From positions 1 through 64,000 of the IMG/VR virus record IMGVR_UViG_3300044701_003953: DNA of 64,000 bases; one strand, 5' to 3'. Position numbers and translations under genes: made by a program. This document shows positions 1-61,917 of the stretch, piece by piece (position 1 is the first letter of the stretch; each line of letters begins with the position of its first letter). The notes under the pieces were generated by a model. That model was not told where the DNA came from. It saw nothing but the letters and a program-made list of their open reading frames with translations, and did not search any database.

Positions 1-42
1 CTACCAATCCGATAGTGGATTGTATCACAGTTAGTTGGGTTA

Positions 43-131
43 CCATATCCAAACGCACTGGCAGGTCGCTCAAGCCTGCTGTCTGCATTGCCGCGGTTGA
101 TCATTCCGAATCTCAATGCGTTTGGATATAG
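43..131 (-). ncRNA. Long-stem hairpin cassette A (13-bp perfect inverted repeat around a ~59-nt structured insert)
   Basis: atatccaaacgca (45-57) is the exact reverse complement of tgcgtttggatat (117-129); the insert contains a GCAGG/CCTGC stem. Strand inferred from the upstream promoter and attenuator. Confidence 0.55.
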
Positions 132-136
132 TGTCG

Positions 137-211
137 CCATATTGAAACACACTAAACGAGGAGTCCTGTTTCGAACCAGTACCGTCTTATCTCTAATGTG
201 TTTCAATATGG
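137..211 (-). ncRNA. Long-stem hairpin cassette B (15-bp perfect inverted repeat around a 45-nt insert)
   Basis: ccatattgaaacaca (137-151) / tgtgtttcaatatgg (197-211); the stem is homologous to cassette A with compensatory base changes. Confidence 0.55.
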
Positions 212-380
212 TACCACAGCACACAGTCTACAAGAAACTGATTTTGTGGTCAACCATATGACAGGGTCGATACCCTGCCCAGGAGTCTTACAGTCTGCGT
301 TCTCGCCACAGAGTTCATGGATCCTGTCCGCCCGTTTATTTTTTTGAGTGCTTATGGGACCTCGTTTCCGCTTGCACCTT

Positions 381-414
381 AAAACAAAAAACCCTGGGTC
401 TTTCGATCCAGGGT
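381..414 (-). terminator. Rho-independent terminator (attenuator terminator)
   Basis: Minus strand ACCCTGGATC-GAAA-GACCCAGGGT followed by a U-rich tract (TTTTTTGTTTT). Confidence 0.8.
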
Positions 415-445
415 CCTTGTAGAATTCTATGTGTTACAATGAGTT

Positions 446-568
446 CTACTCAGACCCTCCACGATCAAGACGCTCAATCATTAGGGCACTAAAGTTAGGC
501 CAATAGGAATGGCCTGCCTTCGATTGGCATCCTAATGTTGATATGTTTGACAGTTTTGTAGTCATCAT
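446..568 (-). CDS. Putative 40-aa attenuator leader peptide MMTTKLSNISTLGCQSKAGHSYWPNFSALMIERLDRGGSE
   Basis: Translated by hand (below the ORF-track cut-off). ATG lies 7 nt after the -10 box; the last codons overlap the antiterminator strand. Confidence 0.6.
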   Translation of the reverse strand: MMTTKLSNISTLGCQSKAGHSYWPNFSALMIERLDRGGSE

Positions 569-575
569 AGTATCT

Positions 576-604
576 ATTGTATAGTCGTTTTATTTATGTG
601 TCAA
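576..604 (-). promoter_or_regulatory. Sigma70-type promoter TTGACA-17-TACAAT with embedded TAAATA late motif
   Basis: Plus-strand tgtcaa 599-604, attgta 576-581, tattta 591-596. Confidence 0.75.
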
Positions 605-659
605 CCGGTGGGAACCTACAATGTTCTCTATATTTCGTCCGATTTCGAAAATATTTATT

Positions 660-1553
660 CTATTGATCAAATATTCCTAAATTAGTATACCTGTCCTCGC
701 GGTCACAAACTATGGTGACTATAACAGAATCATCTTTAGCGGGCAATGCCAAAGATGCCCAAATATTAGCACCCGACGTGAAACCAGTTTTGATCCCTTC
801 AACTTTGTAGAGTTTTTTAGCCGTTATCTTTGAATCTTTAATAGAAACATCAATCATTCGATCAATGATCGCCTCTCTTCCTACTTGCGGTTCATACCCC
901 GGGCGCCAGCGAGATATGCCCGGAATGACCCAACTTTCTATGTCTGGCCGTACACCAATGATTTCTATATCGGGGTTCATTTCTTTAAGGAATTTACTCA
1001 CCCCGGTGATAGTGCCCATGGTCCCCATGCATGAAACAAAATGCGTGATCTTGCCGCCGGTATCTTTCCAGATCTCGGGTCCAGTTGTACTGTAATGATA
1101 TCTCCAGTTATCGTCATTGGAAAATTGATCTAACATTTTTCCACGACCCAGAGATACTAATTCTTTAGCACGATCTCTCACATCTGCCTGGTCTCCGTCG
1201 ACGATTTCTAGTTCAGCACCATTGGATATTAAAAGATTCTTTATATTTTCATTGACAAATTTAGAAATCACCAGTAAACATTTATAACCTTTTTGCTGGC
1301 AGATCATAGAAAGACTGATACCAGTATTGCCACTTGTTGGCTCTAATAACGTATCTCCGTTGGCTATCTCTCCTCGACGTTCGGCACCCTCGATCATGCC
1401 GATCACTGCTCGATCCTTTACTGATCCGCTGAGATTTTCGCTCTCCATCTTGACGAATAGACGAATGTTTTTGTTTCTATATTCGTCCGGTATTATACGC
1501 TTGAAATTTTTTAAAGAAGTATTGCCTATAGTCATTGGAATATCGACGACCAA
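660..1553 (-). CDS. cysM: Cysteine synthase B (O-acetylserine sulfhydrylase, PLP-dependent); start may be ATG at 1535
   Basis: TIGNT, GSVKDR (PLP lysine), PTSGNTG, DQFSN, HYSTTGPEIW, MGTMGT, IPGISRW and CDREDRY all match CysM. Confidence 0.9.
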   Translation of the reverse strand: MVVDIPMTIGNTSLKNFKRIIPDEYRNKNIRLFVKMESENLSGSVKDRAVIGMIEGAERRGEIANGDTLLEPTSGNTGISLSMICQQKGYKCLLVISKFVNENIKNLLISNGAELEIVDGDQADVRDRAKELVSLGRGKMLDQFSNDDNWRYHYSTTGPEIWKDTGGKITHFVSCMGTMGTITGVSKFLKEMNPDIEIIGVRPDIESWVIPGISRWRPGYEPQVGREAIIDRMIDVSIKDSKITAKKLYKVEGIKTGFTSGANIWASLALPAKDDSVIVTIVCDREDRYTNLGIFDQ

Positions 1554-1804
1554 ATTTTTAGCTTGTCGATCTTTCTTTTTTTAAATTCGATGATGTTTTC
1601 CTGATCGACTACCGTTTGATCAATGAGTATGTCTATCATCGCTAACACATCGGCGATCTCTTGTTCTAACATTTCTTTGTGCGGAATGTTAGTTTTATAA
1701 TGGCGAGATTCTAGCCCAAACCTACGGCATTTACTAACTTCTACGATGACTTCGGCACACTCTTCTTGTAGGATGTCGAGTGCCTGCTGTGTTTTAGCGT
1801 CCAT
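1532..1804 (-). CDS. MazG-like all-alpha NTP pyrophosphohydrolase
   Basis: LQEECAEVI...EQEIADVLAMID (EExxE / ExxD) motif; start trimmed to the ATG of MDAKT. Confidence 0.7.
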   Translation of the reverse strand: MDAKTQQALDILQEECAEVIVEVSKCRRFGLESRHYKTNIPHKEMLEQEIADVLAMIDILIDQTVVDQENIIEFKKRKIDKLKIWSSIFQ

Positions 1805-2555
1805 GTATGACGTGGCGTACTGTATCCCAGAATGCCATCTTATCATCGATAGACTTGTGTCCGGCATCCTGCGCTTCTTGTATTTTTGTCGAATTGCCGT
1901 CGCAGAAAATATTAACTAATTCCACCGCTGCCGGGCCATGATCGTCTGTGTCAACCTCGATATGTCTTTTTAACCAGGCGTAGAACTTAGGTGCTTCTTG
2001 CTCAGTGATGCCTAACTGTTTGACCATGTTCATGTACATTCCGGGGATGACTGTCTCTCGACCGAACGCAAATGCAGCTGCGGCCACATGCGGTTTGCCC
2101 GAATTGATAAATCCAAACGTGCTCTTCATAAAGGCTCGGCTAGCGGCAGGTGCTACTTCCATGGCTTCGTACAAACCTACTGAATGTATGCGTTCAACAA
2201 AGTTTAGCACACGGGTGGGGTCAGCGCCGATCTCTTCCATGGCTTCGATGTAGAGATCGAAGTGACTAATATATCTACCGTCAAAACAATCGCTTTCTTC
2301 GGCCACCATGATCGAGTTGATAAGACGAGCGGCACCATTTTTAGTATACTTGCTGGGTATCCACGGCACTGCGGTTGGGGCCACATAATTCTGCAAGCAC
2401 TTGACCAAGCACATGAAATCCCATACACAATAGACGTGATGTTCCATGAACGTGGCCAATTGTCGCTTATTCTCCATGACATCTGTAGTCAGTAGAGGAT
2501 GATTTTCTAATCGTGTCTGATGTTCACGTATAGCTTCAAGATCCAGCATCTTCAT
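1794..2555 (-). CDS. DUF3050 family protein (heme-oxygenase-like diiron fold)
   Basis: FMEHHVYCVWDFMCLVK, RLINSIMVAEESD, SHFDLY, FAFGRE, LKRHIEVDTDDHGPAA; start trimmed to MKMLDLE. Confidence 0.8.
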   Translation of the reverse strand: MKMLDLEAIREHQTRLENHPLLTTDVMENKRQLATFMEHHVYCVWDFMCLVKCLQNYVAPTAVPWIPSKYTKNGAARLINSIMVAEESDCFDGRYISHFDLYIEAMEEIGADPTRVLNFVERIHSVGLYEAMEVAPAASRAFMKSTFGFINSGKPHVAAAAFAFGRETVIPGMYMNMVKQLGITEQEAPKFYAWLKRHIEVDTDDHGPAAVELVNIFCDGNSTKIQEAQDAGHKSIDDKMAFWDTVRHVIHGR

Positions 2556-2721
2556 TTTTTCCTTGTTCAGACTTCTTAGCACGAGGCGGTTGCAATGTAG
2601 CGGCAATCTCTGCTTCGATGAGAGCACGACGCAAGGCGCCGCGTTCGGGATGATCCCACCATTTTGCAAAATGTATTTTTGATTGCTTTGAAAGTTTGAA
2701 ATTTTTGTTTGGAGATAGCAT
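2536..2721 (-). CDS. Small hypothetical protein (61 aa)
   Basis: Fills the gap between operon genes with tight coupling; start MLSPNK. Confidence 0.6.
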   Translation of the reverse strand: MLSPNKNFKLSKQSKIHFAKWWDHPERGALRRALIEAEIAATLQPPRAKKSEQGKNEDAGS

Positions 2722-2723
2722 TT

Positions 2724-3242
2724 TTATTCCTTCATAAACCCTGAAAAATTGACTGTGCATAGATCACGCATGCCACCATTGACAGTAACGTGAGGTACCT
2801 GGTCGTCCCAGATCGTTCCTTCGCCAACTTGCCAGCCAGCACTGGCGTAAAGTGTGCCGTCTACGGCATACTGTGTTATTTGGCCTATGTCAAACGGAGT
2901 AGCATAGATCACGGCTCGGACCATCCGGCCGGTTTCATTAGGGAACTCGGTACGCAATTTATGGAAAGTATCTGAGTGCAGCGGGATAATCGAGCCTGGT
3001 GGTATCACTATGCTTGAGATAGTCTTAACATCAAACCCAAGGTCCTGGCTGATCTTTTCCATATTAAATTCGTCTGTGTTCCACCACAGCTGATGGATGC
3101 GAGTATTTTCTAAACAATATGAAGATGGAAAGTTACTTCCTTCTTGATACATTTTAGTACCAATAGAACTGACTTCGTTTACACGGTGGTCAGCATTGGT
3201 AAAACGCGATAGATCGAAATCTACCTTGACATTTTTCAACAT
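2724..3242 (-). CDS. Cupin / Fe(II)-2OG oxygenase-like protein (aspartyl/asparaginyl hydroxylase-like)
   Basis: IPPGSIIPLHSD (HxD) and a distal WDDQVPH..NGG motif. Confidence 0.6.
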   Translation of the reverse strand: MLKNVKVDFDLSRFTNADHRVNEVSSIGTKMYQEGSNFPSSYCLENTRIHQLWWNTDEFNMEKISQDLGFDVKTISSIVIPPGSIIPLHSDTFHKLRTEFPNETGRMVRAVIYATPFDIGQITQYAVDGTLYASAGWQVGEGTIWDDQVPHVTVNGGMRDLCTVNFSGFMKE

Positions 3243-8358: not shown

Positions 8359-9434
8359 TATGCTTCCTCAAGTTCTCCAGCCGGGATGTCTTCTGCTTTA
8401 GACTCTCCGCGGTGTGGGTTAGCGACGAAATCAGTCATGACTCGGTCAAGGATGCCTTCTTCGTTGCGTTCCCAGGCTTTACGGAATTCTTTGACTTCTT
8501 CGCCGGCTGCTGTGACATATTTAAGCCTGTTACCATCTTTTTGTAACAAACCTTTGCCTTCGAAGAGATCGACTAGTCCTGAGTAAGGGTTCATACCAGT
8601 CTCATAAGGGATCTTGACTTGGACTGACTCGAAAGGCTTGGCATAGCGTGTCTTCATGATCTTACAACCAGCACGGATACCTTTGACTTCGGAGATCTTG
8701 TTGCCGTCTTCGTCCTCTTTGAGCTTCATCTTCTTCATAGCGACTACGATAGAAGAAGCATAGATAAAGCCCTGTCCGCCCGAGATCTTGTCATCGGGGT
8801 CGAACATGTCTTGGCTGGCGTAGGTGTGGTTAGTTGCCACTAGCCCGATGTTGAGACTGCCAAACATGTTCACGCAGTTACGGACTAGAGCTGTCAGTGA
8901 TTTGGCTTTACGACCCAAGTCACCTTTCATGTCGCCGGCTTCGAACTGGTTCACATCAGTGGGAGTCAGCATCATGCCCAAAGAGTCAAGCACGAACATG
9001 ACTTTGGGACGCTGGTCTTCGGGTAGCGTCTTGTATTCTTTGACGAACTCAGAAACCATCTTGGCCACATCGTCGATCATGGCCATGTTGAGTTTGAGTA
9101 GTTTGTCTTCGGAAGTATCTACACCCAAGGCATGTAGCCAGGCTTCGTCAAGTGCGTTCTCTGTGTCGATCAGGATCACATAGATGCCTTGCTGTTGTGC
9201 GTGTCGAACCAGGTTACCGGAACAGATAAACGATTTACCTGCGCCAGACTCGCCAGCGAACACGGTGACTTTACCTAGCGGGACTCCTTTGTGGAAGTCG
9301 CCGGAGATGAGATAGTTCAGAGCATAGTTGCCGGTGCTGATCCAGTCTGTGGGGTCATTGAAGCCCACGGAGATACCGTCGATGCTCTTAGTGATTGATT
9401 TACGGAATTTACTTACGTCGAATGGTTTGCCCAT
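8358..9434 (-). CDS. uvsX: RecA-like recombinase UvsX
   Basis: Walker A GESGAGKS, LIDTENALD, VLDSLG, ISGGQGFIYASS. Confidence 0.92.
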   Translation of the reverse strand: MGKPFDVSKFRKSITKSIDGISVGFNDPTDWISTGNYALNYLISGDFHKGVPLGKVTVFAGESGAGKSFICSGNLVRHAQQQGIYVILIDTENALDEAWLHALGVDTSEDKLLKLNMAMIDDVAKMVSEFVKEYKTLPEDQRPKVMFVLDSLGMMLTPTDVNQFEAGDMKGDLGRKAKSLTALVRNCVNMFGSLNIGLVATNHTYASQDMFDPDDKISGGQGFIYASSIVVAMKKMKLKEDEDGNKISEVKGIRAGCKIMKTRYAKPFESVQVKIPYETGMNPYSGLVDLFEGKGLLQKDGNRLKYVTAAGEEVKEFRKAWERNEEGILDRVMTDFVANPHRGESKAEDIPAGELEEA

Positions 9435-61419: not shown

Positions 61420-61917
61420 TTACAAGATCCGCATATGCGGATCTATCGCTTTCGCTATTCGCTCAGCGATGTTTTTTCTAAATTAGAACTATTGTTTGTT
61501 TTTAAGTATCATCCAGATTAAGCAGCCACACTTCGCCCCTTGCGGGGCGAAAAAGGTTTTACTAGCATCATCCGAGTAGCACAACCACTTAGCGTTGGAA
61601 CTATGATTGACTATATTTTAATATAAACAATCGCGCAGGCGGTCATCCGGTACCTGCTCATCCCGTCTTCCTATGACGGCGGGGTCTACGACATACGCTA
61701 ACACATCGCAGAGCCGTGTGAGTATCGTTGTAATCTCACATCTTTTAGCCTTGATAAAAGAACATTTGTCTTACAGCGAAACCAGTTGATAAAGGCATAT
61801 CTGGTCATCGTCCTGTCAAGGATAGTCGCTGTATGCTCGCGGCGGCGGCGAGACTTCGGTCCCCGTGATCCAAAGATCCGGTTATCGTCGGCACCCGATG
61901 TTGGCCGGTGCTAGCCT
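61420..61917 (-). ncRNA. Candidate large structured non-coding RNA downstream of the GIY-YIG gene
   Basis: About 500 nt with no ORF of 60 aa or more, at least 8 local hairpins, long-range complementarities and a GCAA tetraloop. Confidence 0.55.

Follow-up and report, generated by a model that had tools for sequence, protein, structure and literature searches.

Can a short reading frame that uses almost every amino acid, placed directly before a transcription terminator, act as a sensor of translation in a phage genome? This question is raised by a locus close to the end of the uncultured viral contig IMGVR_UViG_3300044701_003953 (207.5 kb), of which we analysed the first 64,000 nucleotides (hereafter the window; window position 1 is the contig end). 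A preliminary description of the locus, made from the sequence alone, proposed that a leaderless leader peptide with 19 of the 20 amino acids controls an attenuator, and that any tRNA shortage would switch on the RNA array downstream. The comparative data presented below support this interpretation, although in the absence of transcription or translation data the translation of the frame, the direction of the switch and the signal sensed are inferred.

Anatomy of the locus

The phage is a T4-like myovirus with a T4-type portal and large terminase, a tail sheath and a major head protein, the latter being closest (about 69-70%) to jumbo phages of Sinorhizobium, Vibrio and Pseudomonas such as PA5oct. 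The features listed in Table 1 confirm the preliminary description: the promoter, the ORF and the U-tailed terminator (missed by a consensus scan) are present on the minus strand, and both pairings proposed for the antiterminator are exact. The promoter is the best promoter-like site in the first 3 kb, and the short distance between its -10 hexamer and the ATG makes a transcript that starts at or within 1-2 nt of the A geometrically plausible.

Table 1. Features at the end of the contig, in window coordinates.
Feature	Position	Strand	Details
PLP-dependent enzyme gene (cysteine-synthase fold)	660-1553		Upstream neighbour of the unit
Conserved 38-nt block with a small hairpin	605..642	minus	Directly upstream of the -35 box
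Promoter P1	576..604	minus	TTGACA 604-599, 17-nt spacer, TACAAT 581-576; 11 of 12 matches
Leader ORF	446..568	minus	40 codons plus TAG (448-446); ATG 568-566, 7 nt after the -10 hexamer; 19 amino-acid kinds, lacks Val
Predicted long hairpin inside the ORF	461..538	minus	Tip (GGCC...GGCC) holds the conserved Trp codon at 502-500
Antiterminator hairpin	410..458	minus	Outer stem 458-452 with 416-410 (AGGGUC 458-453 with GACCCU 415-410); inner stem 449-444 with 424-419 (GUAGAA with UUCUAC); stop codon in its 5' half; dG -21.0 kcal/mol
Intrinsic terminator	381..416	minus	Arms 414-405 and 400-391 (10 nt, 90% complementary), GAAA loop, T6GT4 at 390-381; stop codon 32 nt before the GGACCCTGG arm; dG -14.1 kcal/mol
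Conserved structured RNA module	260..377	minus	Hairpin 377-348 with AACGAGG loop; GGGCGGA at 333-327; stem 326-322 with 284-280 enclosing hairpin 312-294; hairpin 279-260
Second promoter-like site	225..253	minus	TTGACC, 17 nt, TAGACT; 9/12
Two long inverted repeats with related arms	42..216	minus	216-131 and 132-42
Extended -10 promoter element	19..27	minus	TGATACAAT; promoter-like site at 24-19

RNAfold places both antiterminator pairings in the minimum-energy fold of the transcript 570..378, which reaches -64.2 kcal/mol (z = -5.4; 0 of 200 shuffles fold as well). The antiterminator and the terminator share positions 414-410. When the whole leader is forced into either state, the terminator state is slightly favoured (-60.6 against -59.6 kcal/mol), so any choice between the two would be kinetic. 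Taken alone, however, this locus is suggestive and no more: 19 or more amino-acid kinds in 40 residues has a probability of 0.06-0.09 under three null models. Moreover, the downstream RNA array of the preliminary description contains no tRNA or tmRNA that ARAGORN recognises in the 380 nt left before the contig end, but conserved hairpins and promoter-like sites instead.

Related units keep the frame and the alternative hairpin

A protein search with the 40-aa product gave no homologue, Rfam searches of the window and of related loci at gathering and E-value thresholds gave only chance-level hits for the unit, and blastn of three family members against GenBank phages gave no match. The upstream PALP gene led to only two relatives, 72% identical, in viral and metagenome collections. 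These at first seemed to lack the unit, but one contig (L002) has it 1.5 kb further on, just before its tRNA array. The 38-nt block upstream of the promoter is identical apart from one base in L002 and L003, two contigs whose neighbouring gene is only 72% identical in protein; it was found only in these contigs, with a diverged copy in L078, the window's closest relative. In contrast, an alignment of DNA contigs from public sequencing runs with the window revealed that the unit and the 300 nt after it occur in several other phages from freshwater samples, sometimes with a different upstream gene, and that pieces of the unit recur with other bodies.

We therefore scanned viral contigs in two ways. 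A gapped pattern of the terminator gave 47 contigs, against about 0.3 expected by a rough estimate, of which 45 have an ATG ORF ending shortly before the terminator (37 distinct sequences). To remove the bias of a fixed terminator, a second scan used the promoter type only (TTGACA, ATAAATAAA in the spacer, TACAAT) and gave 27 further distinct units carrying 22 other terminator arm sequences. The same terminator pattern in 596 billion bases of bacterial genomes gave 15 hits: 14 are ordinary gene ends with no such ORF and no tRNA downstream, and the fifteenth is a near-identical copy of the window's unit on a 9.4-kb contig binned with a Polynucleobacter genome.

The reading frame is kept in all 64 distinct units although the peptide drifts almost neutrally. 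Frame 0 contains 0 stops in 2,828 codons, whereas frames +1 and +2 contain 226 and 263; ORF lengths run from 30 to 57 codons with in-frame indels, and the stop always lies 23-33 nt (median 29) before the terminator. Between close relatives pN/pS is mostly 0.3-1.5, and changes are spread over the three codon positions. A promoter of the same type (10-12 of 12 matches, often with ATAAATAAA in the spacer) precedes most family members, and the ATG lies 6-10 nt after the -10 hexamer in 25 of the 37 units of the first set and in all units of the second set, while nine units have a 47-58-nt 5' UTR with an SD-like purine stretch. This is the pattern expected of a regulatory leader ORF and suggests that what is conserved is that the ORF is translated, not how translation starts or what peptide results.

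The alternative hairpin is likewise conserved. We folded each nascent RNA from the ATG to the end of the terminator's 5' arm, and in 64 of 64 units this arm pairs with a complement inside the ORF that starts 8-44 nt before the stop. The complement changes along with 23 different arm sequences: GAACCCTAGG pairs with AGGGTTC, AGAGCCCCTGG with CCAGGGGGTTCT, and ACCCCAGGA with TCCTGGGG. The longest Watson-Crick complement in the last 48 nt of the ORF averages 6.35 and 5.78 nt in the two sets, against 3.8 in dinucleotide shuffles. These per-sequence folds and shuffle controls replaced an alignment-based analysis (MAFFT and RNAalifold), which was weakened by register shifts and by the fixed arm of the first set. 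The GGG of the antiterminator strand is read in all three frames (31/19/14), which explains apparent peptide motifs (Gly-Gly-Ser in the window's subfamily, Arg-Val-Arg-Glu-Gly in others) as RNA conservation. The conserved AUGAUGA resembles a C box, but there is no conserved D box.

These observations bear on an alternative view, namely that the unit is an independent small transcription unit, either a small RNA or a micro-protein gene, which merely sits next to tRNA arrays transcribed from their own promoters. The strong promoter and terminator, the strong structure of the RNA and the slight preference for the terminator state at equilibrium would all agree with this view, and because attenuator-derived RNAs can act in trans (PMC6614838), a second role of the terminated RNA is not excluded. 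Nevertheless, a plain small RNA does not keep 2,828 codons free of stops, a functional peptide would not evolve with pN/pS near 1 or have its most conserved stretch read in three different frames, and a plain gene end does not need a covarying complement of its 5' arm inside the ORF in 64 of 64 cases. We regard this explanation as unlikely.

Position before tRNA arrays and the proposed attenuator

Nearly every unit with enough flanking sequence heads a same-strand tRNA array. In the terminator-anchored set, every locus with about 400 nt or more of downstream sequence has a same-strand tRNA 39-1136 nt away, apart from one chance hit (contig L093) and L078, in which no tRNA is seen within the 497 nt available. 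Up to 24 same-strand tRNAs, of many specificities, lie within 5 kb, and none lie on the opposite strand. In the promoter-anchored set, 19 of 20 units have a same-strand tRNA within 1.8 kb, against 24 of 69 other matches of the same promoter pattern (P = 1e-6). Transcription of these tRNAs need not depend only on read-through, because 10 of 30 loci have a promoter-like site of 10/12 or better between the terminator and the first tRNA, and the window has promoter-like sites after the terminator; the remaining 20 of 30 loci have no such site, which argues against the independent-unit view.

A conserved structured RNA module always comes between the terminator and the first tRNA, and many loci also have a conserved 51-60 aa ORF with its own SD. 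The module is supported by an alignment with compensatory changes, precedes the first tRNA in other subfamilies as well, and has no Rfam match; contig depth over it is about three times that of the flanks in the source sample. The second promoter-like site is conserved in position in the relatives grouped as family 1. The two inverted repeats are of the kind that separate tRNAs in L002, where such a hairpin starts at the CCA end of one tRNA and ends at the 5' end of the next. The extended -10 element lies within window positions 1-55, which are shared with two contigs (L007 and L008) that continue into protein genes and same-strand tRNAs. The contig analysed here ends before any tRNA gene appears, and scans for the first 30 bases of the window and for the sequence that follows them in L007 and L008 did not reach its other end.

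The explanation that we consider likely is a ribosome-dependent transcription attenuator at the head of a phage tRNA region. Host RNA polymerase would start at P1 at or next to the AUG, so that a ribosome loads at once on a leaderless mRNA. If the ribosome keeps pace with the polymerase, it covers the antiterminator strand in the last part of the ORF when the terminator is made, the terminator folds, and transcription stops about 185 nt from the start. If the ribosome lags anywhere in the first 30 or so codons, the antiterminator forms first and the polymerase reads on into the RNA module and, in relatives, the tRNA array. The predicted hairpin inside the ORF may act as a pause or synchronising hairpin. 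As the ORF has no run of any one codon, the switch would report overall decoding speed rather than the supply of one amino acid, and because the product is tRNA, it would form a negative feedback loop. On the other hand, one codon per amino acid should be less sensitive than the codon runs of classical attenuators, and untranslated RNA would read through by default.

Alternatively, coupling might work the other way or by another route: the ribosome may be needed to release a paused polymerase, or the nascent peptide may arrest the ribosome, so that translation promotes read-through. The stable hairpin inside the ORF, a conserved motif in mid-peptide and known effects of ribosome-terminator coupling (PMC4824070) leave room for this possibility. 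However, in E. coli terminators more than about 30 bp from a stop codon work at full efficiency (PMC4824070), so a ribosome at the stop would not block the terminator. The only conserved competitor of the terminator lies inside the ORF, where a translating ribosome must unwind it, and the peptide is not conserved enough for an arrest peptide. We consider this alternative very unlikely.

The leader-peptide attenuators of enteric biosynthesis operons (trp, his, leu, thr, ilvGMEDA, pheA) likewise combine a short ORF, an intrinsic terminator before the regulated genes and an alternative hairpin that uses the terminator's 5' arm; their ORF is translated and a ribosome reaching its end favours termination, which for the units described here is inferred. 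The units described here have no run of regulatory codons, are probably leaderless and precede phage tRNA genes instead of genes for biosynthetic enzymes. Moreover, no upstream segment sequesters the antiterminator strand as the 1:2 hairpin does in the trp leader, since the hairpin in the ORF body ends before this strand and does not pair with it in any computed fold. The closest known design with a leaderless ORF is found in mycobacteria, in which polycysteine short ORFs act as cysteine-responsive attenuators (10.1101/834739); those carry runs of Cys codons and report one amino acid, whereas the family described here has a canonical terminator/antiterminator pair and no codon run. The E. coli pyrBI attenuator (mentioned in PMC4824070) appears to be a kinetic race between the leading ribosome and RNA polymerase, as proposed here, but its leader ORF appears to run through the terminator, so that a closely following ribosome would block the hairpin rather than permit termination. 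T-box leaders may also report tRNA status through a terminator/antiterminator choice, but they would bind one uncharged tRNA directly without translation, and no T-box hit was obtained at Rfam gathering or E-value thresholds in the window or in related loci.

Phage tRNA arrays have been known for about fifty years, and interest in them has grown with evidence that they rescue infection from tRNA-cleaving host defences (PMC10264068, PMC11464382), which offers a possible reason for making tRNAs on demand. In the literature searched we found no description of a leader ORF or attenuator in front of such arrays, nor anything on how their expression is controlled. If the model holds, attenuation is not limited to sensing one amino acid for one pathway, phage tRNA supply would be homeostatic and possibly inducible by host defence, and the cassette of roughly 185 nt, which recurs in dozens of large uncultured phages, would be a compact natural sensor of translation stress that could be used as a reporter. 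The family also marks the start of tRNA arrays in metagenomic phage contigs.

Amino-acid diversity of the leader ORF

Among the 64 units, 29 have all 20 amino-acid kinds, 22 have 19, seven have 18, five have 17 and one has 13. Single-sequence P values range from 0.01 to 0.97, but over 23 clusters (50% identity, single linkage) the mean is 18.43 kinds against 17.10 expected (Fisher P = 1.3e-3; Stouffer-type Z 5.2). Cys, His, Trp and Gln are present more often than expected, Val and Asp less often. The signal is real but moderate, and part of it is tied to conserved RNA motifs.

The conserved Trp codon could also indicate an attenuator that senses one particular tRNA or amino acid, most likely Trp or Tyr-Trp, with the wide repertoire as a by-product. 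A Trp codon sits at codon 20-26 in most of the 64 units, usually 32-75 nt before the antiterminator strand, Tyr-Trp occurs in 27, and Trp is present in 83% of cluster representatives against 57% expected. Yet there is only one such codon and no run, and its UGG is the start of the 3' strand of a small conserved hairpin (GGCC...UGGCC in family 1), so that conservation at the RNA level explains it. A few units lack Trp altogether (e.g. those on contigs L076, L089, L119 and L135), other amino acids are over-represented as well, and the downstream arrays carry tRNAs of many specificities. A specific sensor is therefore improbable in our view.

A more far-reaching possibility, which we put forward only tentatively, is that large phages carry a general gauge of decoding speed, in which a leaderless mini-ORF is selected to contain every kind of amino acid and races RNA polymerase to an antiterminator. 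Any shortage of any charged tRNA, whether from codon mismatch with the host, host shut-off or tRNA-cleaving immunity, would then open transcription of the phage's own tRNA array, and the new tRNAs would close the switch again. A response to tRNA cleavage is pure inference. This would be the first attenuator that senses the whole tRNA pool and the first known regulator of phage tRNA supply.

To control for shared ancestry, we mutated each member of seven independent sister pairs at random by the observed number of changes, rejecting stops. The simulations lose 1.2-2.1 kinds, whereas the real sisters lose none (combined Z 3.7, P about 1e-4). For example, the window has Cys at codon 14 and Ser at codon 27, while L078, a contig from another run, and the Polynucleobacter-binned copy have Ser at 14 and Cys at 27.

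RNA and protein-coding elements around the leader unit

A conserved structured RNA module lies between the attenuator and the first tRNA, and was found in the window as well as in five related viral contigs (L002, L058, L075, L089 and L100), in which it is located just after the terminator. The module comprises a hairpin with a 7-nt AACGNGR loop and a covarying stem, a GGGCGG element, and a stem enclosing a hairpin with a GCGNNAA loop. It has no match in Rfam, and may represent either a processing signal or a new RNA gene. In many loci, a conserved ORF of 51-60 aa with its own SD starts 9-26 nt after the terminator. Its products share a core of the form ...LT.EQL.KLI.DKFERA..., for which no Pfam or PHROG match was found. 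However, this ORF is absent from the window and from most of its subfamily. On the other side of the unit, directly upstream of the -35 box, a 38-nt block containing a small hairpin is almost identical in relatives whose neighbouring protein is only 72% identical, although this block is not part of the wider family.

The window also contains long inverted repeats with related arms (of the CCATATTGAAACAC... type). In L002 such a hairpin starts at the CCA end of one tRNA and ends at the 5' end of the next, so that these repeats look like inter-tRNA spacers and are perhaps processing sites. In the window, in contrast, they occur without recognisable tRNAs.

Locations of features in the window and in related viral contigs (L-numbers)
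Feature	Location (strand)
Structured RNA module	window 260-377 (-); L002, L058, L075, L089, L100, just after their terminators
ORF of 51-60 aa	L068:7261-7440 (+); L099:3353-3526 (+); same position in L059, L061, L066, L072, L081, L088, L091, L092, L094, L096
38-nt block	window 605-642 (-)
Long inverted repeats	window 42-216 (-); L002 downstream of position 8674
Match to Polynucleobacter-1 RNA motif; copy of the leader unit	window 61771-61916 (-); L222
Auxiliary-type genes	window 660-3242 (-)
Predicted permuted tmRNA genes	L063:6252-6700; L079:8133-8581; L068:307-783; L070:5085-5412
tRNA with CUA anticodon (ARAGORN)	L072:4320-4393 (+)
Short Phe-rich ORFs	L105, L129, L142, L150, L162, L166, L169, L173, L188, L208, L212
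Unit-like cassette with low amino-acid diversity	L135, L180

Auxiliary-type genes and putative host

A run of auxiliary-type genes in the window encodes a PLP-dependent enzyme of the cysteine-synthase fold (PF00291), a 111-aa ORF, a DUF3050/haem-oxygenase-like protein (PF11251) and a 172-aa ORF with no Pfam match. The window further contains a strong match to the Polynucleobacter-1 RNA motif (RF01718, 102.5 bits). A near-identical copy of the leader unit likewise lies on a contig binned with a Polynucleobacter genome, and together these observations suggest that the host is Polynucleobacter.

tmRNA and tRNA predictions and leader-like cassettes

ARAGORN predicts permuted tmRNA genes in several of these phage contigs, and in two of them (L063 and L079) the prediction lies about 100 nt upstream of the leader ORF. 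The same program calls a tRNA with a CUA anticodon (an amber suppressor type, labelled Pyl) in L072, 3.5 kb upstream of that phage's leader unit.

Among the matches of the promoter pattern, the same promoter type is in eleven contigs followed 3-7 nt later by very short Phe-rich ORFs of 6-12 codons, for example Met-Arg-Phe-Leu-Phe-Val-stop and Met-His-Phe-Phe-Phe-Tyr-Ser-Gln-stop. No terminator was found here by a simple scan. These ORFs may constitute a different, Phe-type leader or, alternatively, simply mark the start of an RNA gene.

The one clear outlier to the rule of high amino-acid diversity is a unit-like cassette in L135, a 357.6-kb contig from the window's own sample, and in L180. 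This cassette possesses the same promoter, terminator and antiterminator complement, but a 30-codon ORF with only 13 amino-acid kinds. Nevertheless, tRNAs still follow 346 nt after the promoter.
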